The translations under genes and the position numbers were made by a program. A model generated the notes under the pieces. That model ran no database searches, was not told where the DNA came from, and was given only the letters and a program-made list of their open reading frames with translations. Shown here piece by piece: positions 37,162 to 62,595 of a stretch of DNA of 64,000 nucleotides. Source of the DNA: Syncephalis fuscata S228 (Eukaryota > Fungi > Zoopagomycota); NCBI GenBank assembly GCA_025786725.1, contig JAHLTZ010000027.1, positions 310,001-374,000 on the forward strand, given 5' to 3'. Numbering within the stretch: the first letter of the stretch is position 1; each line of letters opens with the position of its first letter.

Positions 37162-39232
37162 TTAATGATACTGTGTAGCTTTTAAAAATGTTAATACACG
37201 CGTATGCATTTGTTGTTCATTATGATCAGGTAAACCAGTTTCTGGTAAAGACGCTAATAAAAATGTTTGATCTCGATCACTATTGCTATTGCTATTATCA
37301 GAAATGCTAGACTTTGATTTTAACGTGGATCGATACATTTGTGCTAGCTGTTTAGCTCGTGCCGGTCGTTTGAACGGATTGACGACAAAGTAGACAAGTC
37401 GTGTTTCTAGACATTCATCAATCCAGTCGAGACACTGAGCAAGCCATTGACGTATCATAAACTTTATACTAGATGTGGGTTGCCATGGTAAAGGTTGTTG
37501 CTCGAGTCGACATTCAATGGCTGCCTTGTTAAACAAGTCGGTAAATTTGGCCAAATGCTGATACTGCACTGTTTTATCTGACTCGACCATTGACCAGCCA
37601 CCCGTAGCATAGGTCGTTAATAGTGCTTCATCGACACTCGACTGCATTACAAGCTGTGTGTATAAATCATAATTATTTAGCTGTACAATGATGGTTTGCG
37701 GCGATTCAGTTATAACATATCGACTTTCTGAATGAGGTAGGATAATAGCATCAGCTGGTGAGCATGGCGCTCGAATAGAAACGGTCCAGCGTGAATTGGA
37801 CATACGTGATATATCACTTAAGCGCGTATCTAACCATTGATGAACTGCATCCATACAATCGCTAATAATAAATCACAAAAAACTAATATTAGTAAAATAA
37901 ATATAGTATTACAAATAACCTACCGCTCAAAGCTTGAAGGGGCAGTGCTGCAACAGAAGAGACCATTGGATTAGGACGAGCATAAATGGGCAAGTAATGA
38001 CGATAGGCCAATCTCCATGCTTCGTACAAAATACGTGGCATTGTAAGGAAAATGTCCAGTGGATGCGTTATTACCAAGTAGGCAAGAACACGTTCATCCA
38101 ATAGGTAGGCAGGTCCCGCTACATCTGCGGCCAATTTAGCACTTGGCTGACTTGTTGTATTGGTCTCATTTGACGGCTCAGTATTTTTATTAGCAGCAGC
38201 GTAAACTGGACATACTGTTGCCGATCGATTCATAACAACACGTGCATTAATATAACTATTGGCACGGGTATCAATGCCATGTATTTCGTAGAATCCATTA
38301 CGTGGATTAAATGGTGAGACGTGAAATTCACGCGGCGTTTCAAAACAAAATTCAAATCTATAAAATATTAAATATTGATCGGTTAATTAGTTAATTAATC
38401 AAAGTTTACGAAAAAGAGTTATTATACAGTCACACTCGCTATCGACACCTACCCTTTTCGTTGATCGGCCAATTGGTCGCGTTCGAGGTCAAAAGCGTAT
38501 AAATGGGTTTCACCAAACGTGTTATGTACCTCAATGGCGAACACCCGGAGTCGTTCCGACAAACCGTTGGCCACTGGTGCTTCTATCGGCTCGTAGCAAT
38601 AATAGAAGGAGGCCGGATTCATCGCATAGCCAAAAAGCCGTGGCGTTGTAACCAACTCAACACGCTCAAGGCTATCAGTTTGAATGTTCTAAGAAAACCA
38701 GGTTAATTATAATGCCTGTTGATGCACGTGAAAATTAACTTACACGTTCCTGTAACCGATAAAATAGCTTTTGTTTTAGTGTGGGACGCGTTATATTTTC
38801 TATCGGCAATGCATCGCAAGGCAGTTCGCCCAAATAGTCGCGAGAGCAAAGCGATAAAGGGCGCCACCACTGTGATACGATGCTATCGTAGGCAAACCAC
38901 CAAGGCAGACGACTATGAGTAACACCGGGCCGAGCCACAGATAATTCTCGGTCCGCACGACCCATCTCGAGTGCATCAAGGTCCAATCCGAAATAGAAAA
39001 AGCGATAAGCAAACGAATGTAAAATAGGTTCAAACCGAGTATGGCGTGTCTTTACGACATAGATACGATGTGGCGATGATCCATGTGCCGTGTCTGCCGT
39101 GGCCGGTCGAAGCAAGGCCGGTGCAGTATATTGGAGTAAAGTGGATAGCAAGCAATAAACGCTACCACCCAGTAAAATGACCAGTAAAATAGTCGATATT
39201 AAACTAGATGGTGCTATTTGCTCGGTATCCAT
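37162..39232 (-). CDS. DUF1365 family protein (UfaO-like) with N-terminal TM helix and C-terminal extension, 4 exons
   Basis: HTRFEPILHSFAYRFFY, PRLFGYAMNPASFYYCY, EVHNTFGETHLY, FHVSPFN and PRILYEAWRL are DUF1365 motifs. Confidence 0.9.
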
Positions 39233-41500
39233 CCTTGCAATGAGATGAAGTGTACTTGGCCAACAATATAATGTTTTAAGCGGGTCAAATATAAGTTAAA
39301 ATAATAACAGTAATAAAAATAAAACCAATAAAAAGGAAAAAGCGAATTCGCCGTCTAATAAGCCGAGACCAAATAAACGATACAATGTCACAGAAACAGC
39401 TACCTACTCAATTCATTGGTCTTAAGTCACAGTAATGTTTTATTGGTGCGAATAAGATTGTGATGGGGGAAATGCAGTTAACGCCGTAACTCACTAAACT
39501 AATCTGCTGCATTACAGAGCAACAGCTGCCTTGTAAATATCATTGTGTAACAATATCTAACAGCCGCCGTTTCTCGTATTCGCTGTTCAACTACACTTTC
39601 CCCTATGGATGGCCCCAGTTTACCAGATAACAGCAACAGCACCATCGCCATTCGAATAGGCCTGGATCGCGGCATTAGACGGCTAATATTTTCGGCAGTT
39701 AAGCTTGCTAGAACAAGTACACTTTGGTAGTAGGACGGTCCGACGGACCAATGACTGATGGATGGAAAAAGACATACAGATTCGTAAATATACGCAGTAG
39801 TATGTGCACAAACTGTGTGCAAATGACACAGTAAACAATAAAACTGGAATTTACTAAACCAATCAATGTGTGGAATTATATTTTGCCGATTCAGAAATTC
39901 AGCGTAATAGCTGTTACAATAATAATATGTAGCAATTGTATGGCGGCATGGTTCTTTCCGGTTATACTGCATATTATTGCGGGAGAATTGCTCAAGTTGG
40001 CAAGCGTTTTGCTGCAACGGCGATAGCAATGATCATTGCTGTTGTTACTCGACCGCTATGGCTTGTGATGGAAGCAGCCTGCTGCAATGGCCGATGACTG
40101 ACAAATGACCACAAAGGGCACAGCTATGCAATGAACGAGTTTAATGCAGTATTATTTCGTAATTAATATCAATACTGTATTGCCGTCTGCCGTGAAACAA
40201 AGAAACTATTCATTTCTCAATACACAAACAATAGCAACTGCTGGTGTAACACGTCCGCATAGGAGTCAAGCAATTAATTGCACCGATACATCTTGTGATG
40301 AGCAAAAATTAACATATTGCTGACTCAGTAATAGCAATGTATATTAAAAATAGCCGATTATGTTGTTGGTTATTTTTACCGAACGTCTAGATGATCGACA
40401 AGCATCGATTAAAATGCATCAACATAATCAGATGACTTTGCACATCATTGTTTACTAATGCAAGTTTATTCATTTGTCGTATTATGTTGTACCAAGTAGC
40501 TGGTATGATGTCATTTACAACATATGATTCATTCTACCAACGCCTGATTGTTGTTGTTGCTCTTTGTTGTTGTTGTTGACGATGCATCAACAAGGATTTG
40601 CAGCTCATCTTGAACAATGGCCATCTTCTATTGCAGGATAAAGTGTAATCCCTGACTAGAAATTCACTCATGCATAAGGTACCAAAGGGGAACTAGATAG
40701 AAAATCTTTGCATATGGCGCATGTTTGTATACTTGTGTTATCAATTAAACATTGATTTCTTCGATGTAAACTGAATTTAATTCAATAAACTTTACTGTTG
40801 TAGTGTATCATCTATGCGTGTCTATGTGTATGTTATTTTCTTAAAATGTAAATGGCAATCTACATCAACGTGACGCTGTTTTGGGCAAATTCCCTTTTTT
40901 AGATTTTGAAAACAACTCGTATCTGCAATCACATTTCACAAATACCAGAAATATCATTTGCTTTATCTGAACACAATGGTCCTCGTGTGGGATGCGTTGT
41001 AGGTGCAAGCAGTCAAGTGCATAGCGTGCTCATAATTGCCAACATCGGCAGCTTAGCTTACAACATTTGTAAAGTTTGATCACAAGATCAGTACACAAGC
41101 CTTGAACTCAAAGCCATCCGGACCGTAAAGAACAGGTAGGGCGTCTTGTAGGACCGTGCTCCTTTGGAAACATCTTGTTACAGTCAGTTGTACGATTTAT
41201 TATAGCAAGCGGTGCTTGACGTATCCGGCCAAAAGCTGTCTATTCCAGGAGATGCACGCGCGCATGCACGTGCTGGGCTGTTGTTCGGCAAGTTATCGGC
41301 CTATATCGATGCTACCAGTCGGCCCGCCTCTGCATACTGGTAGTTTTAGGCTCCGCATACGCAGAGGCTCAACTACATAAGACTTGCCAAATACCCGGAC
41401 TTATTCTGATTATCCGTTTTCTAGTATAATCTCCCTCTATTAAACTGTCTTATCTACCTAAGATATTGACCATTATTATCAAAAATTCTACTTAGCCACC

Positions 41501-43306
41501 ATGCAAGTCAGTACACTAGGAGACGCGTATACATATGCTATGGCGGCCGCGTGGTCTAAAGCCGTCAATGGTGGTACGTCATAGTTGTTTATTAAATTTT
41601 AAAATACACATGTGCTAATAACAACAATTGCATTTATAATTTAATTGTAATAATGTTTATTAGCTCGTAGTTCGATCATTAGTATGATATCTCGTGCAAC
41701 TGTAGGCCATTTACACATTGTTGATGTCGACGGCACAACCTATGATATCGGCAACAAGGCTGCTCGTGAATCAAAGAGCGGTGATGATCCCGTTGTTAAA
41801 CTGTACGTCTTGAATGATCGATTTTGGTTACGATTGGCACTTTTCTCCGATGTGGTAAGTAGCAAATGTAACTAGTTACTCAGCAACATCTGATGATTAA
41901 TCTGTATATTATTTAGGGATTTGGGGAATCCTACATGTACGAGGAGATTGACATTGATAAGCCAGTGGACTTGGTCAAGGTAGGCAGTCGCTATCGGTCG
42001 GCTCTCGCGTGCTACAGTGATATTTAACCATGTATTGCAGTTTTTTTTGCGTAACCGCGAGCAAATAGGCGAGGGAGAGACATGGTTTAGTCAAGCAGTC
42101 GAGTATCTGACTCGCTTTCTTAGTTCTCGCTTCATTAACAATATTGCCAATTCGCTACGCAATATTCAAGAACACTATGACCTTGGCAACCGGTTATTCT
42201 GCTCTTTTCTCGATGCTTCACTTACTTATTCGTCGGCCGAATGGGATTGGAAACGATGGGAAGCTTCGAAACGAGGGGATGCCACTGAGGAGTCACTTGA
42301 ATCAGCGCAGATACGCAAGATTCGCAAACTTATTGACATGTGCTGCTTAAAGCCTGGAGATCGTTTGCTGGAAATTGGCAGTGGCTGGGGCGCACTAAGT
42401 ATTGAGGTAAGTACTGCAAAATGCCATAATAGACACTTGTGCAGTAATTAATACATTTTTGCTTATTTTAATTTAACGATAGGCTGTGCTTCGTACAGGC
42501 TGTACCGTCACAACACTTACGCTGTCTGAGGAACAAAAACAGATGGCTGAAGCACGTATTAAGAAAGCAGGACTTGAAGACAGTATTACTGTTCTATTGT
42601 GCGATTATCGTATGCTTGAGCCTACAGATAGGCCATTTGATGCTATTGTTGCAGTAGAAATGCTCGAGGCAGTTGGTCATGAATACTTTCCAGCATTCTT
42701 CGGCCAATGCCATCAATTGTTGCATCCACAACATGGTGTATTAGTTGCGCAAGTAATTACAATGCCGGAAAGTCGATATGATAATTATCGTCGAGGTGTC
42801 GACTTTATTAACAAGTACATTTTCCCTGGTGGCCATTGTCCGTCAGTGCACGCACTTATGAATGCTGCAACATCAGCGAGCTCTGGAAATTTAGTGCTTG
42901 ATTACGCTGAAAATCGTCCACGTGACTATGCACGCACACTAAAACAGTGGCGTTTGCGATTTGATGCTGCGGCAAGTACACTTTGTAAGGACGTCGAAAG
43001 TACTACCGATTTCGAGAAAGTTGGCGATATGGTAGTCCAAAACACACCAACTCTTAATGTAAAGGCAGCAAGACAGCATCTTCAGATGTACTTAAAAATG
43101 ACGATGCTTTGCCTGAATGGCTGTCAAAAGTGTGTGGTGAACCCGTCACATCTAAACCATCCGAGCGATATGATAAAGTATTTGAGCGTCGCTGGCGCTG
43201 GTACCTCTCCTACTGCGAAGGTGGATTTAGTGAACGTGCTATTGCGCTAATGCAACTACGTTTTACACGACCAGCCAACGATCGTCAAACTGCCGGCTAT
43301 GAATAG
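41501..43306 (+). CDS. Cyclopropane-fatty-acyl-phospholipid-synthase-family SAM methyltransferase (UfaM/Cfa-like), 5 exons
   Basis: GCCACCATG start; GFGESYM, NIQEHYDLGN, LLEIGSGWG, VEMLEAVGHEY, DFINKYIFPGG, RRWRWYLSYCEGGF. Frameshift at about 43040-43100. Confidence 0.92.
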
Positions 43307-43758
43307 TTTTATAATTATAGAGATATATACCTATATATATATTTATGGCGACTCTGAATTCTTTTGTGTTTTTTTCTAATATACCAATAAACTATATACT
43401 GCTTCTTTATTCTATATTGAGCGGCCCAATTGAAATGATATAGTGCACGTATATATGTAAGATCAATTTTATACTATACTATCATTTATTAGTAGTAATA
43501 ACTAAAAGAATACATGTATATGCGCAATATTGGTTTTATATTACTATTTATCGTTAATATCGATTAATAAAAGAATACAAAAAGTAAGCAATTAAATATG
43601 CTTTTTAGTTATTCATTATATATATATACTAGTAGTCGGTTATGATATTAGAATGTAAATTTTACAAGCATAAGAGTTTGGTGTTGAATTGTAGTTATTT
43701 ATTTGTATGCAAATAATAATTACCAAATATTCAAATAACTTCATTGGTATTAATTTGA

Positions 43759-45693
43759 TCAAACAACTTCAAACTTGTTTGAGCCCGATCTCAAAATCAA
43801 ACGTTCTCTGCATGTACCGCTTGGGCATGTAAAAACGTGACGATCTAGTGCCCAACCATTCTTGCCTTCATAGAAATTATTGCGTTCTTGGAGGTCATTT
43901 TCTAGGAAATCAACTGCTGTATCCGGTAGATTGGTCGTGTAAACCTCATTGTATATTTTTTCGTGATTCTTTAAATCAGAGTTGCCCCAATTTCCTTTGC
44001 AATAATTCGCGTTGGTCGAAGCGCATGCTGCAATCCAGAATCGTCCCGTATTAGCCAAAAGGATTTGTTGACTAAACTTAATTTGGAAATCTTTGTAATA
44101 CGCGTTTGCATTAATAGCGTATTTGCCGGCTTTAAAGTTGGCTAGTTCCTCGCGTAATTGTCCAATACGTGCCTTTTGAAACATTTCCGTAAATAGATTG
44201 AAAGCCATGTCTGAAGCAATATCAGCTTGTTCTAGCGCATAAAGATCCCATTTAGCTAGATCGGCCGATGATGGTTTTTGATTTTTACGATTTTCGGCAA
44301 CGGTATTGGCGATGTAATCGCCTACAACTTGAACACCACCTTTGATTATACTAAGGAGAGGCGGTAATGGTAAGAATGAAAAAATAATACTGATAACGTT
44401 CCAGATCTTCTCCCAAGCTGATGGCCGATCTACAGGCGTAAGTAAAATATTTACCAATTTGGACACCATGACTGTGCCGGACGCCAAATAGTCTTTGATG
44501 TTATTGGCATAGGTGCGTACATAGTCGGCTAAATCATAAGCCATTTCAAACACTTCGTTTGCGCCTGGAAGCATTGCGTTAACGTCCGCCTTCATGTCAG
44601 GAGTCAAGTCTGTAAGAATCTTATTGCGGCCTAGGCCAAGCATTGAGATATAGTCTTTGATTTGGAATGAGTTGGCATATTCAACCATAGTTGAGGTGTC
44701 GTCCAATGCCTTAATTGTTTTCTTGACATCTTCAAGTAACCATAATTGTGATTCGTCATTGTCTGCACATGGTACAAGAGTTATTGCAGCTAGACTCTTA
44801 CGTTCACTGGCGATACAGAGTTTATACTGATAAGACATAATTTGATAGTAGTTGCTAGGAAGATCCTTTCGAGTAATAAGCTTCATCTGGAACAGTTGAT
44901 TGTCACGCCCTATGCATTGTGAAAGCAACATTGGTACTCCTTTTGCTTTGACAGCAACGGCACTACCATTTGCTGTAGCATTTTTGCTGGTATTATTGAC
45001 GGGTGCAATGGGTGTTGCTATTGTTGGGCCAATTGGTGCAAGTTGTTTAGTGTCATTAGGTGCATAGTTAATACGACGTTTTAAGCTATGCTTATGAGCT
45101 GCGATATCACTATTATCACGACGACGAAGTGATATGTTGGTAGATGCCGACGTCTTTGATTCTACGCCCGGTATACGACCACCATGAAATAGATCATCGT
45201 GGAATTCCTGGATTAAGCTACGGCGCTGAATACGTGTCTGTGAAGACACGACTTGCTTGCCAGCCTTCTGCGTAGCAACTACAGCCGTCAAACATAGCTT
45301 TGGATCACTAAAACGAATCATGTAAATGTGACTTTTCTCGACCACTTCCCAATAATTGATTTGCTGATTTGCTGATGTGATGGCACATTCTTGCTCATCT
45401 ATACCAAGTATATTTTCACCAATATTCTGTGCATTTTCAGCAGACATGCACCATGCTTTGTCTTCGTTTTTCTGTGTCCACTGACGCAATTTAAAAAGAG
45501 AATACTTTTCCTCAGGCGGATTGTATATACGTTGAGCAGCATTGCTTATATCAACAGTTGTACTACTAGCTGTGCTACTGGCTGTGCTATTGGTTGTGCT
45601 ATTGGCTGCCGGAGCCGCCTGTCCCGCAACCTTGCTTGCAAAAATAGCAATTACTGCTAGCCATATACTGTTAGGTGCTGCTTTAGATATCAT
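43759..45693 (-). CDS. Secreted ricin-B-lectin (beta-trefoil) plus helical-domain protein, paralog A
   Basis: Signal peptide; three Cys-pair/QxW-like subdomains (WCMS..ECA..NYW, LCLT..SQC..NQLF, LCIA..PCA..SQLW); intronless. Confidence 0.75.
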   Translation of the reverse strand: MISKAAPNSIWLAVIAIFASKVAGQAAPAANSTTNSTASSTASSTTVDISNAAQRIYNPPEEKYSLFKLRQWTQKNEDKAWCMSAENAQNIGENILGIDEQECAITSANQQINYWEVVEKSHIYMIRFSDPKLCLTAVVATQKAGKQVVSSQTRIQRRSLIQEFHDDLFHGGRIPGVESKTSASTNISLRRRDNSDIAAHKHSLKRRINYAPNDTKQLAPIGPTIATPIAPVNNTSKNATANGSAVAVKAKGVPMLLSQCIGRDNQLFQMKLITRKDLPSNYYQIMSYQYKLCIASERKSLAAITLVPCADNDESQLWLLEDVKKTIKALDDTSTMVEYANSFQIKDYISMLGLGRNKILTDLTPDMKADVNAMLPGANEVFEMAYDLADYVRTYANNIKDYLASGTVMVSKLVNILLTPVDRPSAWEKIWNVISIIFSFLPLPPLLSIIKGGVQVVGDYIANTVAENRKNQKPSSADLAKWDLYALEQADIASDMAFNLFTEMFQKARIGQLREELANFKAGKYAINANAYYKDFQIKFSQQILLANTGRFWIAACASTNANYCKGNWGNSDLKNHEKIYNEVYTTNLPDTAVDFLENDLQERNNFYEGKNGWALDRHVFTCPSGTCRERLILRSGSNKFEVV

Positions 45694-47254
45694 TGTATAG
45701 ATGTAGAGAATAATATTGCGCCGGCGCAATTGATGTTAAAGGTGTAGTCGGAAGAATTGTAACGGTTGTAATGAAATAAAGTGGAACGTGAAAATAATCA
45801 CCTGGAATATAAGCGTAGAAAAGATAATAAAAAACGGATGTAGTGCGATTTTCATAATACGATGGCAATTTAAAAGATGACGATAGGCGCTTGGGCAATA
45901 TCCTTGGTTAGGTGGGCTGTGAAACAGTATTAAACACCGCATTGCTATTTAAGGCAAAAAATAGACATAGAAAACACTCCGTAATTATCCAAGTCAGCTA
46001 TTGGTTCTCTTTTTGGACAAAAAAGTCTAGTATAGGCATGTTTCAATTGCTATTCTTTTGCTACTTCTACGCTGTTAAAGCACAATCACTAATTGCCAAG
46101 ATTACTATCTAGCCTATAAATAAACACCGCTGCTTGATTGATATTTGTTATCTGTATTTGTCAAAGCGTTATATTACTTTACCACGTGCAAATTGCTAAA
46201 TAATCTATTATTCAAAACAGGTTCAAACAATGGGTTTAGGAGACGACGAGACAGCTGAAATATTTTGTAACATTGTAACAAATGCGCAACAATATGTTTC
46301 TAAAACCATGACGAATAATCTGTAAACATTTGCCGATTTATGACGAATTGTGTATATACGTATTAATCAAAACAATCTATATGGCAATAGAAATGGTATA
46401 GAGTTAAAATAATAAACTTTAATTAAATAAAAGTGGAATTTTGAAAAATACATCATTTTTAAATTTATTTATTTCCATTTTTATAAAATAAATACATTGA
46501 TTTTATTTTAATTAGTAAAATACATCTTTTTAAATTTTATTAATTTTATTTATTGATAAAATCGTTTTTTGTTTGCCCTACACTTCGTTTTGTAATGACG
46601 TTTATCACAAATTAACTAATTTTTAATGGCATGTTTTATTTTTTATAGCTGTTTCATTAGTATTTTGTATCTATTTTTCAATAAAAACGTTTATTTCAAC
46701 ATAACTACTGTTTTAATACTACTAGTACTAATTTTTACACGACATATTTCTTGTATTGTATTTTTTGAGTTGCATTTGCCACAAGTATATTATTGAAAGT
46801 TTATTAACAAATAAAATACGATTAATATTGCTGATAATATTGCTACAATTAACTCAATTATATAAATAAAGATTTAAATCAAAATTCGTTGCATTATTGC
46901 AATAAGCTTTTTCCCGTCAGGGATTTTTAGCTTTGTAACTTTATTGAGCTTTAACAACGTTAACAACATTATAAATACATAATACTGCTTTCAGAATAAT
47001 AATAAAAATGCCTTTTTATAATCCAATCCATTTTAACTTACAGAATTTATACAATTACAACTTTTGTTATAAATATGCTAGTTTAAGTTATTTTTACAAG
47101 CTAATGCTATTTAATACTAATACTAATAATATTTTTATTAAATTGGTGTTGAAACATCTAAACTGCATTTTTGTTTTTTTTCTTCTTTAGTTACTTGGTC
47201 AATTTTACATTATTTTATTACTGGTGTTGTGACAATGTCATTTTTTATTAAATC

Positions 47255-47676
47255 AAAAGCAGATCAAGCCTTGTAATATAAAATAATAGTATTTATTAAG
47301 CTATTACAATTGTTAGTGTATATTAAATAATTAAATATGTATCCAGTGCTTTTACTTGAACACCTTTTGGTTTTACATTTGAGAATGTAGCAACATTATT
47401 TGTAATATATTTATTAATGGATTTAATAGTATTACCGAAATCACATGGAAAACCATTAAAATGTTTAATATTGCACTGGATAATCTTTACTAGGCCAGTT
47501 TTCTGCTTTCTGGCAGTTAAAACGAACAGACATTTGTTGCTGGAACGGTCTTCATGAGAACAAATAAGCTGTAATTTTGTTAAATTACTATTTTTCCTTT
47601 TAAAATTACAACCGTTAACAAGCTTAAACGCGTCAACAGCAATCCTCAGTTCTTCAATACTGTTAAATATAGCCTT
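47255..47676 (-). mobile_element. Degraded Mutator-like (MULE/MuDR) transposase N-terminal remnant
   Basis: The open frame from 47676 reads KAIFNSIEELRIAVDAFK..F..KNS..KLQLICSHEDRSSNKCLFVLTARK..VKII..H, then KPK, then YYKA*SA. This fits the MuDR/WRKY-GCM1-like pattern FxSxxEL..C-xn-C..A..H..KPK..YxKAW. No start codon or DDE domain was seen. Confidence 0.5.
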
Positions 47677-47929
47677 TTAAATAGTTTGGTAGACATTGCG
47701 ATAGGCTTTTCAAAACGGCGTATCTTGATAAATAAAATCAAAAAACGATTTATTTTTATTTATTAAATTTATTACAATATGCTTAAAAAATAATAGTTTA
47801 TTATGGTAAAATTTAAAAACAGTGTATTTTACTAATTTTCCCTAAATAAATAAATAATAATAAACTTTAATTAATAAAAGTTACGATAATAATAAAAGTA
47901 TAAGTAATCATTTGGTTAAGTAATATTAA

Positions 47930-49869
47930 TTAGTCCGTTTTGTTTTCAGCTAATCTACTATTTCTAACTTGATAGCTATTACCAAATCCAACTAAACTTA
48001 TTAAAGTTGATGGAATAATACGCAATAAAAAGTCGAAAAGAATCCAAATCCAGCTTAAAATCACCCAAACAATGGAGGATGACCAATAGTCGTCATATTC
48101 AGCATCGTGCAAACCAAATGGCGACTTGGCACCAAGTGCTTCGGCAGCAGCCATGCCGGAACGCAAGCCATCTTCGTGAAAACCATAGCCAGACCAAGCG
48201 CCACAGAATGAAATACGGTCATAAGGAAGATTACGTAAACGTTTTTGAGCAGCAACCGACTAGAGAAATAAACGATGGTTAAACATCAGTGTTATTAAAT
48301 AAGTGTTTTTAACAGTATTATTTATCATTTATTGTCGTTATCATTATCCTTGCTATTTATTATTACTTACCTCAATTGTATAGACAGGATGTTCATAGTC
48401 CCATTCACCAGAAACTGTACCTTCGCGTGGCTCGTGCGGTGGATTAACAGTAACAAAGATTTGGCCGTGTTTTGCTGGATCAAGACTTTGTAGACGATTC
48501 ATCCAGTAAGTTCTAGATATCAATAAACATTTGGCTATTAATAATTTTTATAGACATAATAATAACAACTCACAATGACATTACAGTATCAGTTTTACCA
48601 ACATCTAAACTAAGATAGTTCCAGGCTGACCAAGCATTGACACGTGTAGGCATCAACTAATCAATCGGTCATTATGTGTGATATTTGTTAATAAAATTTT
48701 ATATTTAATTGTCAACTTACATCTTGATCACAGTGAAGAACGGCACGATTACGTTCAAAACGGAAATTTTTTAATTCTTTACGTTCAGCACCAGTGGCTG
48801 ATTCACCTAGAATACGTAGAGACTGATTTGCATGGCAGGCCATGATACATGATCATAATAAGCCTGACGTCCCTGACTATCAGTCACTAATACACGGCCA
48901 TCATCTGTCCGTTGTACCGATTCAACTGCACAGTTTAGATGTACCTCATCCAAGTCGGCACTAATACGCTGGACATACTCTCGACTAAACAGCACATACA
49001 GATGATTAGTAATGTCATTATGGTAGACATGTGTAGACGTGCACAGCTATGCATCGTATATACCTTCCGCCTGCAACAGTCATCCATTGTGGACGATCCA
49101 ATAGTTGAAGTAAACGATGGTTGTGCAGGAAACGTGCTAGAGTCCAAGCAGGAAAGTCTTTAGCACACACATCAGCTGGCGTTGACCAAACAGATGCAGT
49201 CATTGGCTAAACAAATATATATAAATAAATTATTGATATTAGTCTTTAATCATTTATTATTGCTTACCATTAAATAGTCATCTATAAATCCGTTAGAGTA
49301 GCCACGTAGGCCCAACCAATCGCCAATGCCCATCTGCTTTTCCGATTCAGGGACTCGGCTATCGGTGGCAAAGCGCGTAAATTCCCAATTGAAGCGATAA
49401 TGTCGTATAGCATTCGCCAGAATCGCCAACGGACAAGATTACGCGACTGACAGAAGACGGTGCCTGCATTGGTGCCGGACCATTCCAGCTCGCCACAATT
49501 GCGCGAGACAGCAAAGGACATGTCGGAGTTGCGTACAGGTACTTGAAGGTGCGCAAAAAGCCGAATCATATTCGGATACGTCACCCGATTGTAGACGATA
49601 AAACCAGTATCAACTGGACAGCTCTCCAGTTCACCAGCATTTTCGGGTGCATCATATGTCTTTAATGCAGCCGATGGTGGTGTATAATCAACTGTATTAG
49701 CATGTCCGCCCAGTCTATCGGCAGCTTCGTATAAAACGACTTGATGCGGTGAATGGGTTTTAAGTAGCCATGCAGCGGCCAATCCAGTAATGCCAGAACC
49801 AACTACGGCCACGCGAGCATTGGATGCCAAGCTTGTCTGAGCGCTGTCGACGTTTGTTTCAACGGTCAT
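47930..49869 (-). CDS. FAD/NAD(P)-binding oxidoreductase, COG2907/UfaD-like, multi-exon
   Basis: VAVVGSGITGLAAAW, YEAADRLGGHANT, VDTGFIVYNRVTYPN, SDMSF, WSAWNY, YEHP, GYGFHEDG; C-terminal hydrophobic helix. Apparent frameshifts at about 49390 and 48840. Confidence 0.9.
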
Positions 49870-50403
49870 ATTGATATGTGTGTGTATGTGTGTATGTGTT
49901 TGTATGTTTATCAATCTATCTGTCTATCGGTTTATTTATAACGCCGAAAGATAGAAATTAATAAAAGCTGAAAAATGTTTATTCAATCGTGTTTGTCAAC
50001 TTAAAAGCGAATAAATTCAAACAATGAAAATAAGGACCGAAGTGCACGCTAGCTATTGGTTAGCAGCAACTATATTCGGAGCGAGGTGCTATAGAAAAAA
50101 CGTGGAATCATACGTATTTGCCATACTTGTCCGTGATGTGTATATAATGGGGTGATAAGACAGAGCACGCATTGTGCAACCATAGTGTCGGTGTCTGGTG
50201 GATCCGACTGTATTACTGATTTCCATTGACCAACGGGCCGACATAGCACTGCAGATGCAGTGTAACCGGATCTACTGAAGGTGGTCTAATTGAACGTAGC
50301 ATTGTAATAAATGAAGACGTAATCCATCACATTTGTATCCAATATACCGCTACCCATTTATCTTCAACTGTTATTGTGTCTGTGCACTTGTTTATTATCA
50401 ACT

Positions 50404-52036
50404 ATGGCTGCTAAAGTGACCCATTCACTTGATTCAATGTTTCAAGCAGAGACAACATCAAATAATCATGTGCCAAACATGTCTGCCACCGGCTCCCCCT
50501 ATACGGGATGGCTCTCCGACGACTGGACCGACTTCTGGATTGATATGGGCGTTCTACCTGACTGGATTCTGCGACGCTGTTCACGCTTCCTTCTAGGACA
50601 ACGCGTCAAGCAGATTAAAAAGGCAGGCAAGTGGGAGGCGCAAACCGCTTCGGAAATGTCGTATATCGAAGCGGCAAAACGACGAGATGCAACTACCGAT
50701 ACGGATAAAGCAAACGAGCAGCACTACGAGGTAGGATAGACGAAAGATTGTGTCAATATAATGTGTGAATTAATCTACGTTATGGTTGCTACATCATGCT
50801 AGGTTCCTACTGAATTTCTAAAGCTATGCCTTGGCAAACGTATGAAGTATTCAGCCTGTCTTTTTCCTAAAGGTAAATACATAATTTACTATATTGTTCG
50901 TAATTTATAACACTATTAATAATAATAATTCATAGGTGTAACTGAATTGGATGAAGCAGAAGAGCTCATGTTCGAATCATATTGCCGTAAAGCTGGTTTA
51001 AGCAACGGCCAAATGGTTCTGGATCTCGGCTGTGGATGGGGAAGTTTAACGCTATATTTAGCTGAGGTAGGACTATATATAGGCCTATATCCATGTGTAA
51101 CCGCTAACCATGTTGTTGATTGATACTAGAAATATCCAGATTCAACAATTCATGCCTTGAGCAATAGTAGGACGCAACGGGTGTACATTGAGTCCGAAGC
51201 CAAACGTCGTGAACTTGGCAATATCAAAGTCTTTGTTGGTGACGTCGCCACATTTGATTTTCCTGAAAATATAAGGCAAGTTATTTAATGCATTTAATTA
51301 TCTTAATTTGCATGTGCTAGTTAATATTAATTTAAAATTTAGATTTGACCGAGTTTTAAGCATTGAGATGCTTGAACATGTGCGTAATCATGAATTAATT
51401 TTTAACAAAGTTTCTGGTTGGTTGGCTAACAGCGAGTCTCGTTTCTTCGTCCATGTATTCTGCAATCGCACTCGGTCCTACGACTTTGATACCGAAGAAG
51501 GTGACTCGTGGATGGCCCGTCACTTTTTCACCGGTATGTGCAGCTAACTTATTTGCTGATACATACACTAATAGTATACTGTAACACATAGGTGGCTGCA
51601 TGCCAAGTGAACAATTGTTCATGAACTATCAACAAGATTTACGTGTCATTAACCGTTGGTCAATTAATGGCAGCCATTATGGTAAGCAAAAAATAGCAAT
51701 AATTGCTTTATTTGTAGTTAAACGTTCTATATAGCTGCCACCTCGGAAGCTTGGCTAAAACGTCTTGATAAAAACATTGCCGAGGCAACTGAGGTGCTGC
51801 GCCTTGATTTAATTCAGCATCATTTGAAGAAATTGCAAGAAGAGTTGTCCGACGAAGCTGCATCGACAATATCGACGGAAAAACGTCAAAAGATCGAGGC
51901 TGAGGCAGAGAAAGAGGCACGCGTCAGAGTTAATCGTTGGCGTTTGTTCTACATTGCAGTTGCCGAGTGTTTTGCTTATAACCGAGGCGAAGAATGGGGA
52001 GTTGTTCACTACCTATTTGCTCCAAGGAATATGTAG
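50404..52036 (+). CDS. Second CFA-family SAM methyltransferase (coclaurine-N-methyltransferase-like subfamily), multi-exon
   Basis: ANEQHYEVPTEF, KYSACLF, LDLGCGWGSL, FDRVLSIEMLEH, WMARHFFTGG.MPS, RWRLF..AECFAYNRGEEWGVVHYLF. Confidence 0.9.
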
Positions 52037-53360: not shown

Positions 53361-55216
53361 ATGCTTTCTTCGGTCACAGTCTCGGCCATCTGGATGGCCG
53401 TCTTGGCCAGTCTTGTTCAGACTACTTTTGCGCAGAATGGCGAAGTCCCTATTGGTGGCTCACGTATTTATAATCCACCATCGGATGGTATGCGCGTTTA
53501 CAAGCTTCGCCAATGGACGCAACAGCCACAGGACAAGCCGTGGTGTGTTACTGGCAAGCAGGTGATTAATATTGGCGAGGCCCAAAGAAATCTACAGGAG
53601 GAAGAGTGTACACTTACCGCCGATCGTCAGCTCATCAACCAATGGGAAGTTGTTCCGGGCTCTTTGGCATACATGCTTCGCTTCAGCGACTCTGGATTGT
53701 GTATGACCGTTGAGGATGGCCAATATGGCATGCGTGTCCGACGCGATGCCGAGAGTGCCAAACATTTTGTTGATGCATCACTATTCAATGCTCCGCTTGT
53801 TCATCTTGGAAAAGTTCCTACTCATGCTGACATAAAACGCCGTGCTATTTTAAGCCCAGTCTTTGAAGCTATTGGTGTCAAAGGTGGCAAATCTGTTGCC
53901 AAGCCAAACGAGACCGACCATATGACTCCATTGACACCGGATGCACCAAAACCAGTTGTCCCGGTTGCCGATCCAAGCAAAAATGCAAATCCAGATGGTT
54001 CCGCCATCGACATGAGCAAAAAACGAACTCCAGTTATCTTGTCACAGTGCGTCGGTAACGATAACCAAATTTTCAAGGCTAGAATTGTTACGCGTCCCAA
54101 CGCTCGCAATAATTATTATCAGCTTATGTCATACAAATACAAGACTTGTTTGGCCAGTGAGCGCAAGAACTTGGCAGATATAGCTATTGTTCCATGTACC
54201 GATAATGACGAATCGCAACTTTGGTTGTTTGAAGATATTGTACAAACGATTGCTGATGCTGGTGGCAAAACACCATCATTCAATATGCCGACACGCTTCA
54301 AATTAAAAATATCCAATCGCGTCTTGGCCTGACCCGCGACACAGGTGTATCCGACCTGACCTTTGACGAAAAGCAAGCTGTCAATCGCGTCTTGCCTGGA
54401 TCGTTGGAAGTTTTTGATATGACTTTCGAACTTGCCCGATATGTAAACACCTATGCACGCAACATTCTTCAATATCAACAGTCGGGCACTGTAGTTGTAT
54501 CAAAATTGGTTGCAATCTTTCTTAATCCTGAACAGCGCCCACAAGCCTGGGAGAAGCTCTGGGAACTTGGTAAGATGTTCATTGGCTTTATCCCACTTCC
54601 AGGACCTTTCAACATCATCAAGTCCGTTGGTGTCAAGTTGACCGATATGATTTTAGGCCAGCTTGCTCAGCATCAAAAGGACAAGCCAGCTACTCCACAA
54701 GATTTGATCCAATGGGACGTCTATGCTTTAAAACAAGCCGAGTACACTGTAGATGCTCTTCTTAACGCTTTCACCGAAGTCTTCCGTCAATCATCCATTA
54801 ATGATCTACGCACTTTATTGCAAGAATTCAAAGCAAACAAGTATCATATCGCAGCCGATAAATTCTACCACGAGTACCAGGTCCGATTCTCGCAGAAACT
54901 ACTCACTGCCAGAGCCGGCGACTTCTGGACCTCTGTCTGTGTTAGCCGTGGCAATGATATGCCTTGCAATGGTCGCTGGTCAGGCAAAAACTACCGTATG
55001 GGCGATCGCACATACGAGAACTTCTATTCCACCAACATCAACAAGGACGGCATCAGCTATCTCGAGTCGATTGGTGAGAAAGACAACTTCTACAAGGCTA
55101 ACAACGGCTGGAACCTAGACCGCTACTATTACACTTGCCCTGGCAATAATGGTGGCGTATGCGTTGCACGAATGGTACTTCGTCAAAACAAATCCAGCTT
55201 TGATGTTATTGCTTAA
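53361..55216 (+). CDS. Secreted ricin-B-lectin plus helical-domain protein, paralog B (one homopolymer frameshift at about 54270)
   Basis: Colinear with paralog A (RIYNPP, KLRQWTQ, NYYQ.MSY.YK.C.ASERK, DNDESQLWL, GTV.VSKLV, WD.YAL.QA, NGW.LDR..TCP). Adding one A in ggcaaaacacc joins the two ORFs. Confidence 0.8.
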
Positions 55217-57304: not shown

Positions 57305-59521
57305 ATGTCGGCTTTCAATTCTAAAAGCCAGGAGATTGAACAGTCCATTCACAGCTTATTGCCAGAGAAACCGCAAGAACAAGATGCTTTCGCCGACCAG
57401 ATTAATGATGATGACGACGATGAAAACTCGCCGTTTGAGATTGTTCGCGCAACAGTGAGCAACAAGGATGATCCGACCATGCCTACAATGACATTTCGAT
57501 TTTGGATACTTGGGCTGTTTTTTACTGTTGTTCTTTCATTCATTAATCAGTTTTTTTGGTTTCGCGAGACGCCGTTAGTTGTTGGTATTCTTGTGGTTCA
57601 GCTACTGTCATATCCACTTGGTAAGGTAATGGCACATTTCCTGCCTTCAAAATACATTCATATTGGCCGATTAAGATTTTCAATGAATCCTGGGCCTTTT
57701 AACATCAAGGAACACGTACTTATCACTGCCTGTGCCAATGCCTCGGCCGGCACGGCATATGCAATTGATATTGTCACGATTAAACGCATATTTTACAAAC
57801 AAGATCTGGGATTTTTACAATCCTTTGTGCTTGTAGTTACCACACAGTGTCTTGGCTACGGTCTAGCTGGCGTTTGTCGCCGATTTCTAGTTAGACCGGC
57901 TGCTATGATTTGGCCAGCAAATTTGGTAAACATTGCTCTTTTTCGTACATTGCACGAAGAGACTAGTATTACACGTAATGGCGAAACATCAACACACGGA
58001 CCAACACGGATTCGCTTTTTTACAATAGCGGCAACGTGCAGCTTTGTCTACTACTTTCTTCCGGGTTTCTTGGCCCCATTTCTTACTACCGTTTCATTAA
58101 TGTGCTACATTTTTCCCAATAACAAATTACTAAGTCAAGTCGGCTCTGGTTCCCGAGGACTTGGCTTTTTGGCTTTTACTCTTGACTGGAATACAGTCGT
58201 GTCGTTTTTGCTTTCTCCACTAATCACGCCTTTCTGGGCCGAATGCAACATTATAATTGGCTTCTGTCTTATCACTTGGTGTCTAATTCCAGCAGGCTTT
58301 TTCTCGGATATTTGGGATGCCAAAACATTTCCCATTATTTCCAGTAAATTGTTTACAAGTAATGGAAGCCGCTATGATACGCTATCATTGCTCAACAAAG
58401 ACCTATCGCTTAATGAAGAAAGATACCAAGCCTACGGGCCCCCGCATCTTTCCTTTTTCTTTGCTATTACCTACGGCGTTGGATTTGCCACTTTAGCTTC
58501 AGTGATCATGCACACAGTACTTTATCATGGCCGTGATATTGTCAATAGATTGCGCGAGTCACGTATGGCCAATGACGACATTCATGCAAAGTTAATGGAT
58601 CGCTATCCTGAAGTGCCAGATGTTTGGTACATTGGCATTTTTGTACTGAATCTTATTTTGGCCATCGTTGCCTGTGAGCTTTTTGGATTGGATTTGCCAT
58701 GGTGGGGCCTATTAATGGCAGTGCTTATGTCTGCCCTGTTTATACTACCCATTGGCATTATTACAGCAATCGCCAACCAAACTCCTGGACTGAATATTAT
58801 CACCGAATTTGTCATTGGATTTATATTACCGGGCAAACCGATAGCCAATGTTACATTTAAAACGTATGGCTATATATCAATGGCGCAAGGAATAATGCTA
58901 CTTAGTGACTTAAAGCTGGGACATTATATGAAAATTCCTCCACGTCACATGCTTATTGCACAGACTGTGGGCACTATTGTGGCCGGCCTAATCAATCTTG
59001 CTACTGCCTATCTTATGTTTGATCTTATGCCAAATATTTGCCAGGAAACTGAAAAGGTCTGGACATGTTCCAATGCCAATGTCTTTTTCTCTGCGTCAGT
59101 AATTTGGGGCGTGATTGGGCCTAACAGAATGTTTGGTTCTGAGGGACACTATTCTGCGCTACTATGGTGGTTTCTTATTGGTTTGTTGCTACCAGTTCCA
59201 TTCTGGCTACTATCTCGTCGTTTTCCAAATACCTGGCTTCAATACGTACATACGCCGGTAATACTGGGTGCCACAGCCATCATGCCGCCAGCACAGCCTG
59301 TTATGTATCCAACCTGGTTTCTTATTGGATTTATATTCCAGTTTGTTATATATCGCTACCAGCATCAATGGTGGAGTAAATATAACTATGTCTTGTCTGC
59401 TGCACTGGATTCAGGCGTGGCAATTGCAGGCATTATTATATTCTTTGCTTTCCAGTATCACTCCGTTGAACTGGAATGGTGGGGCACAAAGCAAGATTGT
59501 TATAATTTTAAAGTACTTTAA
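57305..59521 (+). CDS. OPT-family oligopeptide/glutathione transporter
   Basis: SPFEIVRATVSNKDDP, NPGPFNIKEH, DLKLGHYMKIPPR, YNYVLSAALD; intronless. Confidence 0.95.
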   Translation: MSAFNSKSQEIEQSIHSLLPEKPQEQDAFADQINDDDDDENSPFEIVRATVSNKDDPTMPTMTFRFWILGLFFTVVLSFINQFFWFRETPLVVGILVVQLLSYPLGKVMAHFLPSKYIHIGRLRFSMNPGPFNIKEHVLITACANASAGTAYAIDIVTIKRIFYKQDLGFLQSFVLVVTTQCLGYGLAGVCRRFLVRPAAMIWPANLVNIALFRTLHEETSITRNGETSTHGPTRIRFFTIAATCSFVYYFLPGFLAPFLTTVSLMCYIFPNNKLLSQVGSGSRGLGFLAFTLDWNTVVSFLLSPLITPFWAECNIIIGFCLITWCLIPAGFFSDIWDAKTFPIISSKLFTSNGSRYDTLSLLNKDLSLNEERYQAYGPPHLSFFFAITYGVGFATLASVIMHTVLYHGRDIVNRLRESRMANDDIHAKLMDRYPEVPDVWYIGIFVLNLILAIVACELFGLDLPWWGLLMAVLMSALFILPIGIITAIANQTPGLNIITEFVIGFILPGKPIANVTFKTYGYISMAQGIMLLSDLKLGHYMKIPPRHMLIAQTVGTIVAGLINLATAYLMFDLMPNICQETEKVWTCSNANVFFSASVIWGVIGPNRMFGSEGHYSALLWWFLIGLLLPVPFWLLSRRFPNTWLQYVHTPVILGATAIMPPAQPVMYPTWFLIGFIFQFVIYRYQHQWWSKYNYVLSAALDSGVAIAGIIIFFAFQYHSVELEWWGTKQDCYNFKVL

Positions 59522-60309: not shown

Positions 60310-62595
60310 TTATTGAGTTGTCATACCCATAATAATTAGAATTCCTATTATCGTTCCTGTTTCAAGTGCCGCTGATAATACATAGTTGTAACGACTCCAC
60401 CAGACGTGTCGGTACCTGTATATTATATATTGAAATACGAATGCTGCTATAATCCAGCTATTGTACATGGCCGGCCGTGCCGGTGGCATCATTGCAGTAG
60501 CTGATAAAATAATTGGCGTGTGTACATAATTCCACCAGCTACGCGGGAACCTTCGAGCCAGTAGCCAAAAAGGTAGCGGCATCAATGCACCTATAAGAAA
60601 TGCCCATAACAACGTTGCATATCCGTTGTCGGGTGTTTCAAACAGTCGCTTTGGTCCTATTACGCCCCAAATGACCGAGGCTGCATAGAATACCCGTGGA
60701 CTTTCGCACGTCCATCCGACCATTTCTTTGCTGCATAGACTTGGATATACGTGAAACATCATAAACATTGTGGCCAAATTGATCGTTCCGGCCAGTAGCG
60801 TGCCAATTACTTGCGCCAAAAACAAATGACGTGGTGGGATTTTCATATAATGTCCTAGCTTCAAATCGGATAGAAATGATATTCCCTGATTCATACTAAT
60901 GTAGCCATACGTTTTAAACGTCATATTGGCCACTGGATTACCTGGAATGATGTAGCCAATGATTAGCTCTGTTAGTATATTTAGTCCGGGTGTTTGGTTG
61001 GCTACTGCTGTCATGATACCAACTGGTACAATAAAGAGTGCTGAAAGGCCCACTGCTAATATAACGCCCCACCACGGTAGTCCCAGCTGATATGCTTGGC
61101 AAATATAGATCGCCACGCCTCCGTTGATCAGCAGAACGGCAATGTACCACCAACTGGGTACCTCTTTATATTGCTTCATTAGGCGTGCGTGTACATCTTC
61201 GTGGCCGGCCCGTGCATCTTTTAAACGAGCCAATATTTCCCGGCCATGATAGAGCACCGTGTGTACTACAACGGACGATAGGGCAGCAAATCCGGCTCCA
61301 TATGTTAATGTGAAAAAGTAGGAAAAATGAGCATTGCCTCGAGCTGCATACTTGTCCAAATCTAGTGTCATTGTTTTTGGATTAAGTACTGCTGCTATAT
61401 CGTATTCGTTGCCGGCATGATCGAGTACATCGGCACTAACAATTGGAAAGCGTTGTATATCCCACACATTGGTGTAATAGGCTGCAGGTAAAATGATCCA
61501 ACAGATAACAACAAATCCCACGAATAAATTACAACTGGCCCAGAATGGCGTTACAAGTGGTGATCCCAAATAAGCAACAATATTATTCCAATCAAGGGAG
61601 AATGACAACACGCCTAATCCTGTTGTACCTGAGCCAATCTGATTCATTACTTGACTTTTTGGTGCTATTAAAGAAAGTATTGATATACTGCTTAGAATAG
61701 GAAAAAAATAGCCTGGAAGAAAATAGTATAATGCGCCAATAACAGTGGCAATAAGAAAAAAGCGCATACGGCTATTAAGTTTCCATCGGTTAACCTGTTG
61801 CTCTTGCGAACTACTATTATTGTTATTGTTGCTAGTATAATCTGTAATAGATGTGCCTGACAGTTCGGTCATTTGGCGTTCACGTTCAATATCTTCATCT
61901 TCGTGCAATGCCCGTAACACGGCAACTGATACTAGATTGGCCGGCCATATCATTGCAGCAGGCCGAATTAAAAACCGATGGCATACACCCGCTAGACCAT
62001 AACCAATACATTGAGTACTTAATATCAGTAGCAGTCCGGCAACAAACGGCAATGGCTGGTTATAAAATACGCGCCGTACAACTACAATGTCCACAGCATA
62101 CGCCACAAAAGACGCCGAGTTGGTACATGCTGCAATAAGCGTGTGTTCTTTAATGTTGAACGGTCCGGGATTTAATTGTAAACAGCAAAATCCTAAATTG
62201 ATTTTGGCATCTGGCAAACGAGCCAGCAATCTGCCAAGTGGAAATGACACAAGCTGCACTACAATTGGTGATATAAATATAACATTATCACGAAAAGCCA
62301 CGATTTGATTGATAAAAGCAAGTGTACACGTAAAGAATAGACTAATGGCCCAGAAACGAAATGTAAGCGTTGGTAGTGTTGGATCATCTTTGTTGCTAAC
62401 GGTAGCCCGTACAATTTCAAATGGCGAGTCTTCTTCATCTAATACAGCCATGGATTCAAGCGTATCGTCATGATAGGCGGCATCTGCATAATGATAAAGA
62501 TGTTCGTCTATGTCATCATTATTGCGGTTGGATGCACCGGCAGATGTTGCGTACAAGCTCGATTCACGGCTAGTTTGCCGCCGCTTGAACAGCAT
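60310..62595 (-). CDS. OPT-family oligopeptide transporter, paralog
   Basis: Same OPT motifs. Likely start MLFKRR at 62595; the C-terminus may extend to about 60226 through a frameshift. Confidence 0.93.
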   Translation of the reverse strand: MLFKRRQTSRESSLYATSAGASNRNNDDIDEHLYHYADAAYHDDTLESMAVLDEEDSPFEIVRATVSNKDDPTLPTLTFRFWAISLFFTCTLAFINQIVAFRDNVIFISPIVVQLVSFPLGRLLARLPDAKINLGFCCLQLNPGPFNIKEHTLIAACTNSASFVAYAVDIVVVRRVFYNQPLPFVAGLLLILSTQCIGYGLAGVCHRFLIRPAAMIWPANLVSVAVLRALHEDEDIERERQMTELSGTSITDYTSNNNNNSSSQEQQVNRWKLNSRMRFFLIATVIGALYYFLPGYFFPILSSISILSLIAPKSQVMNQIGSGTTGLGVLSFSLDWNNIVAYLGSPLVTPFWASCNLFVGFVVICWIILPAAYYTNVWDIQRFPIVSADVLDHAGNEYDIAAVLNPKTMTLDLDKYAARGNAHFSYFFTLTYGAGFAALSSVVVHTVLYHGREILARLKDARAGHEDVHARLMKQYKEVPSWWYIAVLLINGGVAIYICQAYQLGLPWWGVILAVGLSALFIVPVGIMTAVANQTPGLNILTELIIGYIIPGNPVANMTFKTYGYISMNQGISFLSDLKLGHYMKIPPRHLFLAQVIGTLLAGTINLATMFMMFHVYPSLCSKEMVGWTCESPRVFYAASVIWGVIGPKRLFETPDNGYATLLWAFLIGALMPLPFWLLARRFPRSWWNYVHTPIILSATAMMPPARPAMYNSWIIAAFVFQYIIYRYRHVWWSRYNYVLSAALETGTIIGILIIMGMTTQ

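Follow-up and report, generated by a model that had tools for sequence, protein, structure and literature searches.

A compact group of four spliced genes lies at positions 37,162 to 52,036 of a 64,000-nucleotide stretch of the zoopagomycotan fungus Syncephalis fuscata S228 (GenBank assembly GCA_025786725.1, contig JAHLTZ010000027.1, positions 310,001 to 374,000 of the forward strand), which is referred to below as the window. The genes encode a DUF1365 protein, a methyltransferase of the cyclopropane synthase family (CMAS1), a flavin adenine dinucleotide (FAD) oxidoreductase, and a second methyltransferase (MT2), a set that resembles UfaO, UfaM, UfaD, and FufM of the bacterial furan fatty acid pathway. 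The preferred explanation is an ancient, vertically inherited fungal cluster of the ufaD-ufaO-methyltransferase type, whose product, by analogy with bacteria, would be a furan or methyl-diene fatty acid; this statement as a whole is given a probability of roughly 0.55. Its narrower component, that the locus is a conserved, homologous lipid-modifying cluster, can be held with high confidence.

An initial annotation of the same DNA had reported four spliced genes within 15 kb, and this is borne out for every gene by Pfam and hidden Markov model (HMM) matches at the expected positions and by spliced models. The DNA of the window is eukaryotic, has a GC content of about 38%, and comes from an assembly of 29.4 Mb in 371 contigs. 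A first Pfam scan of its open pieces located DUF1365 at 37.9-39.2 kb on the minus strand, CMAS1 at 42.0-43.3 kb on the plus strand, and the N-terminus of the FAD protein at 49.3-49.9 kb on the minus strand, while weaker CMAS matches at 50.9-51.5 kb on the plus strand correspond to MT2. The gene models were guided by homology: HMMs built from bacterial homologues were matched to every stop-free piece of the region, and GT-AG or GC-AG junctions that preserve both the frame and the continuity of the profile were chosen. Spliced joins were made for frame checks, alignments, and trees, and database searches were run with single exons or with unaltered locus sequences. The models contain two introns in the DUF1365 gene, three in CMAS1, five in the FAD gene, and six in MT2, ranging from 52 to 146 nt, with GTAAGT-like donors, TAG acceptors, and a single GC-AG case. 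The genes of the annotated cluster are confirmed in this way, and the picture is amended in three respects, namely a lectin gene and an AT-rich, repeat-bounded element that lie inside the cluster, two frame breaks in the FAD gene, and the uncertain affiliation of the ORF at 37162-37854 with the DUF1365 gene.

In a whole-genome six-frame search, the DUF1365 gene, the FAD gene, and MT2 were each found at one locus only in the 29.4-Mb assembly, with other CMAS paralogues on contigs C200/C317 and C235. The chance that three single-copy genes would fall together with CMAS1 in one 15-kb interval is about (15 kb / 29.4 Mb)^3, or approximately 1e-10. This figure bears on the possibility that the adjacency is meaningless, or that the region represents bacterial contamination or a recent horizontal transfer, an idea that draws on the identity of up to 55% between fungal and bacterial FAD N-termini, about as close as fungi are among themselves, and on the unrelated lectin gene and repeat element inside the cluster. 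However, the genes are also neighbours in no fewer than five further fungi belonging to three phyla, all four genes are interrupted by spliceosomal introns, some of them at positions common across phyla, the GC content equals that of the rest of the window, and fungal sequences fall in single groups apart from bacteria. The flanking genes are also eukaryotic, and an oligopeptide transporter (OPT) neighbour is present in Thamnocephalis as well. Contamination and chance are refuted, and this alternative as a whole retains almost no probability; an ancient transfer into an early fungal ancestor, by contrast with a recent one, is compatible with the best explanation.

The bacterial side of the comparison rests on a scan of one genome per species, with an alignment of fungal FAD N-termini as the query, from which the closest 80 loci were taken; neither Cereibacter sphaeroides nor Rhodopseudomonas palustris is among these 80. 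The FAD homologues come mostly from Alpha-, Beta-, and Gammaproteobacteria and show 41-55% identity. By local open reading frame (ORF) calling and BLAST, their neighbours include DUF1365 in 69 loci, a CMAS1-like gene in 61, a DUF1295 gene in 26, and an MT2-like gene in 24. The usual order is FAD, DUF1365, CMAS, with sizes of, for instance, 454, 269, and 413 amino acids (locus L026), which fits the RSP1091-1090-1089 and RPA2571-2569 operons as described, where RSP1091 is ufaD, RSP1090 is ufaO (250 amino acids), and RSP1089 is a 402-amino-acid methyltransferase (PMC7380195). HMMs made from these 80 loci match the fungal exons over almost their whole length, which upholds the proposed match to the bacterial furan-pathway gene set. 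A search of NCBIfam found no Ufa-specific model and returned only generic cyclopropane synthase and oxidoreductase matches, far under their cut-offs.

With the pathway of Rhodobacter and Rhodopseudomonas (Lemke et al. 2014, 2020; PMC7380195), the fungal locus shares a methyltransferase resembling cyclopropane fatty acid synthase (CFAS), a Rossmann-type FAD protein, a DUF1365 protein, and a distant CMAS-family methyltransferase. The fungal genes differ from the bacterial ones in being eukaryotic, with 2-6 introns each, in being arranged as separate and partly divergent units, and in being interrupted by unrelated DNA. In addition, MT2 lies within the fungal cluster, whereas FufM of R. palustris (RPA0924) is unlinked, and the fungal DUF1365 protein is longer than bacterial UfaO and bears an N-terminal membrane helix. 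A DUF1295 gene stands beside the MT2-like gene in the Batrachochytrium salamandrivorans cluster (L013:6749-7853); DUF1295 was considered as a fifth gene of the window's cluster and rejected, its homologues being located on other contigs (C361, C1).

CMAS1 occupies 41684-43306 on the plus strand, with exons at approximately 41684-41854, 41984-42406, 42483-42984, and 43131-43306, the last junction being uncertain. Its model of about 424 amino acids has junctions set by alignment to six fungal orthologues. PF02353 matches extend over 42017-43250 (E 3e-20 and 8e-34), the exons match cyclopropane fatty acid synthases in PDB (7e-16), and the HMM of the bacterial operon-type CMAS covers the gene at profile positions 99-411 of 412. 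The CMAS domain is accompanied by the S-adenosylmethionine (SAM)-binding motif LEIGSGWG, as expected of a UfaM-type enzyme. The two methyltransferases of the cluster are separated reciprocally by their profiles: the main exon of CMAS1 scores 162.9 bits on the operon-CMAS HMM and 50.1 on the MT2 HMM, and an MT2 exon scores 80.0 bits on the MT2 HMM and 12.6 on the CMAS HMM.

Trees were obtained by quick IQ-TREE searches with SH-aLRT branch support, from pieces joined with X at exon and frame breaks, and they cover fungal and bacterial sequences only. CMAS1 falls in a clade of ten fungal orthologues (support 99), which sits with the operon-type bacterial methyltransferases and apart both from E. 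coli Cfa (88) and from the C200 and C235 paralogues of the same genome. The grouping with true cyclopropane synthases that the initial annotation had named as a result that would count against its proposal was not seen with E. coli Cfa, the synthase in the tree.

A further distinction concerns the bicarbonate-binding residues of E. coli Cfa, which we take to be C139, E239, H266, I268, and Y317. Aligned with this enzyme, CMAS1 reads S, E, Q, I, and Y at the five sites and so lacks the canonical set. Glutamine at position 266 (at about 42.7 kb in the window) is found in 22 of 22 operon-type bacterial CMAS proteins and in all ten fungal CMAS1 orthologues, whereas position 139 is mostly S or A and E239 and Y317 are retained. 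MT2 keeps H266, as does its clade, with A at 139 and F at 268. The replacement of H266 by Q in the CMAS1-type proteins is consistent with an outcome other than cyclopropanation but is no proof of one. The C200 paralogue of the genome likewise has Q at 266. This paralogue (C200:1791-2567) and that on C317 (C317:815663-816439) each lie in a 537-amino-acid open frame and match the profile across an identical range, with 137.0 and 134.2 bits; the pair represents either a duplicated region or redundant contigs, and an assignment to the sphingolipid C9-methyltransferase type would be a guess.

The fourth gene, MT2, extends over 50404-52036 on the plus strand, with seven exons at 50404-50730, 50803-50872, 50936-51066, 51130-51275, 51343-51533, 51592-51681, and 51735-52036; the frame of 418 amino acids is intact, and intron 4 is the GC-AG case. 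Its exons match the coclaurine, pavine, and tetrahydroprotoberberine N-methyltransferases in PDB at 2e-11 and 4e-13, compared with 0.6 and 1.6e-5 against E. coli cyclopropane synthase, and the bacterial MT2-like HMM covers the gene at positions 25-356 of 357. In the tree, MT2 and the clustered B. salamandrivorans gene form a pair (100), which is nested in a clade that includes all 24 bacterial MT2-like proteins (100). FufM of R. palustris has 26% identity to UfaM (PMC7380195) and 37.9% identity to Arabidopsis LIME1 (AT4G33110), a protein resembling coclaurine N-methyltransferase (CNMT) (PMC10940516, Omata et al. 2024). Because of the CNMT-type matches in PDB and the reported likeness of FufM to LIME1, MT2 is assigned, from its sequence, to the CNMT-like branch of the CMAS family in which FufM is reported to fall. 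Its membership in the cluster is well supported, since about 30% of the bacterial loci of the ufaD-ufaO type have an MT2-like gene nearby. The FufM role of this gene had been called the weakest link of the proposal, and it now appears firmer than was thought, given its place in the CNMT-like branch, its co-clustering in B. salamandrivorans and Thamnocephalis, and the MT2-like neighbour in 24 of 80 bacterial loci.

The DUF1365 gene runs from 39232 to 37889 on the minus strand in three exons (39232-38744, 38688-38453, and 38357-37889), forming an open frame of 397 amino acids with an N-terminal hydrophobic helix; its introns of 55 and 95 nt have the ends GTAAGT..TTAG and GTAGGT..ATAG. Three PF07103 pieces lie at 38741-39064, 38479-38688, and 37967-38356 on the minus strand and together cover profile positions 1-235, with scores of 60.9, 53.2, and 36.5 bits where the cut-off is 25, so that the DUF1365 domain is present at full length, as in UfaO; the bacterial DUF1365 HMM matches the same three pieces. 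Linkage of this domain with a UfaD-type FAD gene and a CMAS gene is found here, in five other fungi, and in 69 of the 80 bacterial loci. By analogy with UfaO, the protein is a putative catalyst of O2-dependent furan formation from a methyl-branched conjugated diene. A word-indexed protein search with the first exon gave no matches, nor did a tblastn search of the third exon against plasmids.

Directly downstream, at 37162-37854 on the minus strand, lies an ORF of 230 amino acids that could be a gene of its own or an exon that extends the DUF1365 gene at its C-terminal end. It has no Pfam match and no usable Atlas match, and a weak match (E 0.002, 25% identity) connects it with the C-terminal extension of a 750-amino-acid Funneliformis DUF1365 protein. 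As a fourth exon it was tried with a single splice (37923-37862), which fails to join the frames. Fungal DUF1365 proteins often reach 500-750 amino acids and have an uncharacterised extension at the C-terminus. Many proteins of about 650-690 amino acids (P0259, P0267, P0271, P0288, and others) carry the DUF1365 domain at residues of approximately 4-250 and may be DUF1365-methyltransferase fusions; those that were looked up are metagenomic.

The FAD gene, at 47930-49869 on the minus strand, has exons at 49869-49268, 49206-49064, 48984-48721, 48656-48580 (or -48574), 48512-48371, and 48259-47930. Its N-terminal piece (49282-49914, minus strand) matches NAD_binding_8 (PF13450), Amino_oxidase (PF01593), and DAO and no other family, and seven more homology pieces follow downstream to 48101. 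The bacterial UfaD-type HMM covers the gene at positions 6-437 of 454 in eight collinear pieces, and a Rossmann GxGxxG motif (VAVVGSGITG) is present together with an amine-oxidase-type fold that extends over the full length, as in UfaD. The protein is 66% identical to its Thamnocephalis counterpart (P0121). The FAD gene and MT2 are divergent and separated by 534 bp (49870-50403), and in Thamnocephalis they lie equally head to head, about 560 bp apart; we infer that this interval acts as a shared bidirectional promoter. When a promoter motif common to this interval and the DUF1365/CMAS1 intergenic region was sought, no shared 11-mer was found, and shared 10-mers occurred at the level of shuffled sequence.

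Linkage of the genes in other fungi, which had been proposed as a check on the initial annotation, was recovered as an adjacent trio, quartet, or pair in five further species. In Basidiobolus meristosporus, DUF1365 (minus), CMAS (plus), and FAD (minus) are adjacent and oriented as in the window, while B. salamandrivorans carries DUF1365, FAD, a 360-amino-acid MT2 orthologue, DUF1295, and CMAS within 12 kb. This MT2 orthologue is collinear with all MT2 exons of the window, with a core identity of 57-64%. Globomyces has FAD (minus), CMAS (plus), and DUF1365 (minus) as intronless genes within 4 kb, and Funneliformis caledonium has the FAD, CMAS, and DUF1365 trio within 12 kb. In Thamnocephalis sphaerospora, MT2 and the FAD gene have the head-to-head arrangement of the window, and an OPT transporter comes next; the contig ends inside the FAD gene.

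Introns are common across phyla at approximately 175/176, 221-227, 309/310, and 382/384 in FAD HMM coordinates, and at approximately 151/152, 196-199, and 291-294 in those of MT2. The fungal FAD and DUF1365 sequences each occupy one side of the branch that divides them from bacteria (98 and 100, respectively). Because the fungal sequences keep to their own side of the trees and share introns, the comparison indicates an old, single fungal origin of the cluster. The named relatives of the chytrid DUF1365 query comprise chytrids, the blastoclad Sorochytrium, Calcarisporiella, and Ambispora.

For the pathway itself, we infer the catalytic steps, the substrate, and the furan product from the bacterial precedent. 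Unsaturated acyl chains of membrane lipids would serve as substrates. CMAS1 would transfer a methyl group from SAM onto the cis double bond and produce a methyl-branched trans-olefin (by analogy with Lemke et al. 2020), from which the FAD enzyme would generate a conjugated methyl diene by desaturation. The DUF1365 protein would then insert one atom of O2 and close the furan ring, and the CNMT-like MT2 would add the second ring methyl, so that mono- and dimethyl furan fatty acids would be the end products. As to the initial suggestion of a possibly complete pathway, all four components are present, and the two frame breaks in the FAD gene stand as a caveat.

The main rival to this scheme accepts a genuine lipid-modifying unit with a non-furan end product: a mid-chain methyl-branched, methylene, conjugated-diene, or cyclopropane acyl chain, or another oxygenated lipid, with DUF1365 and MT2 acting on some other intermediate. 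Just two DUF1365 proteins have ever been characterised, and the operon-type methyltransferase RSP1089 is not required for furan fatty acids and has some other role there (PMC7380195). In actinobacteria, 10-methyl stearate is also the product of a methyltransferase paired with an FAD enzyme, BfaA/BfaB (PMC5660069); the CNMT-like family methylates varied substrates, as the PDB matches illustrate, and the fungal CFAS-like protein Cfs1 is without an assigned function (PMC10282164). On the other hand, the sole known activity of DUF1365 is furan ring formation, and with all four components in place the complete Ufa/FufM scheme is the best fit. The fungal FAD enzyme belongs with UfaD in the Rossmann/amine-oxidase type, whereas BfaA is described as MurB-like, and the operon-linked methyltransferase of R. 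palustris, RPA2569, is UfaM itself (PMC7380195). A non-furan product is on these grounds rather unlikely, while carrying more weight than any other alternative.

Several observations weigh against the furan-type cluster. In R. sphaeroides, furan fatty acid synthesis proceeds without RSP1089, and UfaM (RSP2144) is encoded elsewhere (PMC7380195); therefore relatedness to the operon type is no proof of UfaM function. The likeness to the characterised UfaM, UfaD, UfaO, and FufM is drawn from published descriptions, which makes the orthology indirect, and cis-vaccenate is the substrate of the bacterial enzymes. The split between CMAS1 and E. coli Cfa has a support of only 88, from quick searches with SH-aLRT values only. 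Within 10 kb of the CMAS1 orthologues of Coemansia, Dispira, Entrophospora, Exophiala, and Ramalina, no partner genes were found, and no cluster was found in Basidiomycota, the home of proven furan acids, in a shallow sampling made with a chytrid DUF1365 query. Lastly, the FAD gene contains two one-base frame breaks, at approximately 49388-49396 and 48846-48849.

These breaks raise the possibility that this species has lost a working pathway, with the FAD gene as a recent pseudogene carrying two frameshifts in a decaying cluster. Aligned with Thamnocephalis P0121 and Basidiobolus, they fall between YDII and RFNWEF and between YYDHV and IMACHANQ; neither leaves room for an intron, and both are one-base deletions relative to the frames of these two fungi. 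No second copy was found in the genome, and other long genes of the assembly, namely two HSP70 and two OPT genes, are without breaks. Against this, the three blocks that the breaks delimit are open and free of internal stops, all five introns are canonical, and the identity to the nearest orthologue remains 66%. In a control with chaperonin genes (PF00118), at least five of these essential genes in the same assembly are split into pieces that abut or overlap in different frames, while their profile coordinates run on without a gap and leave no space for an intron (C235:7395-8431, C306:908171-909684, C335:15669-16589, C157:215043-215638, and C101:9375-9829), which corresponds to approximately one break for every 2-3 kb of coding sequence of this kind. 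Because the chaperonin genes show the same type of break, the assembly is held to carry scattered one-base consensus errors, and the breaks in the FAD gene are most likely errors of this kind. The pseudogene explanation was considered and then down-weighted after this control, and it is now regarded as improbable.

Eukaryotic counterparts of the furan-type cluster are known from plants and algae. Arabidopsis UFAMD1 (AT3G23510), UFAO1 (AT1G30130), and LIME1/FUFM1 (AT4G33110) occur together on lipid droplets and are hypothesised furan enzymes (PMC10940516, PMC13247531). They constitute a eukaryotic set of the same four activities, assigned by homology, in which LIME1 is CNMT-like, as MT2 is; the methyltransferase and FAD parts are fused in one protein and the genes lie on different chromosomes, whereas the fungal genes are separate and clustered. 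Singlet oxygen in Chlamydomonas induces CFA1, CFA2/CPLD27, which is CNMT-like, and the DUF1365 gene Cre06.g269300, all in a SAK1-dependent manner (PMC4067076). The same families are co-regulated there, which suggests a role in photo-oxidative stress, yet the link is co-expression instead of physical clustering. Mushrooms contain the furan fatty acids 9D5, 9M5, and 7D5, as stated in a passage of PMC9883336 that cites Mueller et al. 2022. The Chlamydomonas, Arabidopsis, and mushroom observations fit, as analogies, a cluster that would work in an Ufa/FufM-like manner.

Two other systems share parts of this machinery. BfaA/BfaB likewise combine a CFAS-family methyltransferase with an FAD enzyme, and their substrate is an 18:1 acyl chain, but BfaA is described as a MurB-like FAD-linked reductase, and the system includes neither DUF1365 nor a second methyltransferase (PMC5660069); the fungal FAD enzyme is not a MurB-like partner. 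Cfa-type synthases have PF02353 in common with CMAS1 and act on lipid-bound unsaturated acyl chains, and the fungal Cfs1, which is induced by blue light, belongs to the same family (PMC10282164). CMAS1 differs from Cfa by S and Q at the C139 and H266 sites and by its separate position in the tree.

Additional features lie within and around the cluster. A ricin-B-lectin-like gene unrelated to the pathway is situated between CMAS1 and the FAD gene (43759-45729, minus strand), and a second one lies just past MT2 (53361-55216, plus strand). The two are paralogous (37% identity, E 1e-77), each has a signal-peptide-like N-terminus and a ricin-B lectin domain, and the pair has no counterpart within the clusters of other fungi. 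An AT-rich element of 24% GC follows at 46408-47879, bounded by 35-nt inverted repeats (46432-46466 and 47809-47843) that are 77% complementary and flanked by a 24-nt direct repeat (46408-46431 and 47856-47879); its ORF of 117 amino acids (47326-47676) has no Pfam match. In structure, the element looks like a degraded DNA-transposon insertion within the cluster. A few kilobases from the cluster, two OPT oligopeptide transporter genes are located at 57305-59521 on the plus strand and at 60310-62658 on the minus strand. OPT genes are also found near the cluster in Thamnocephalis (L111:1056-3323) and, as a pair, in Globomyces (L112:8886-12650), and this proximity may have survived from an older synteny or may be coincidental in so large a gene family.

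Part of this picture is already in the literature, including the occurrence of DUF1365 in Eukarya and the plant and algal homologues of the pathway, while in the publications searched on DUF1365 and on UfaO, UfaD, and UfaM, no fungal subject and no report of a fungal cluster were found. What is new here is the physical clustering conserved across fungal phyla, together with the support for the fourth gene as a member. Tentatively, and with somewhat less than even confidence, the locus might represent a gene cluster for furan fatty acid biosynthesis, the first from any eukaryote, in which as many as five genes (FAD, DUF1365, two methyltransferases, and, in chytrids, DUF1295) form an operon-like unit. 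This unit would have existed in an early fungal ancestor, possibly as an acquisition from a proteobacterial operon, would have stayed linked since the split of Chytridiomycota, Zoopagomycota, and Glomeromycotina, and would produce mono- and dimethyl furan acids that protect membranes against singlet oxygen and radicals.

For practical purposes, pseudogene calls in this genome need read support, and the replacement of H266 by Q offers a lead on what sets methyl-olefin-forming enzymes apart from cyclopropane-forming ones. The plant furan fatty acid enzymes have been assigned by homology alone, and the compact fungal cluster supplies a short, testable gene list, of which the intronless 4-kb trio of Globomyces is directly clonable. 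The cluster is a rare example of a metabolic cluster in early-diverging fungi that has no polyketide synthase, nonribosomal peptide synthetase, or terpene core, mirrors a bacterial operon, and has stayed linked across phyla; it would probably escape standard cluster finders. Fungal 9D5 and 9M5 have so far been without assigned genes, and the four genes described here would provide the first concrete candidates for fungal furan fatty acid synthesis.

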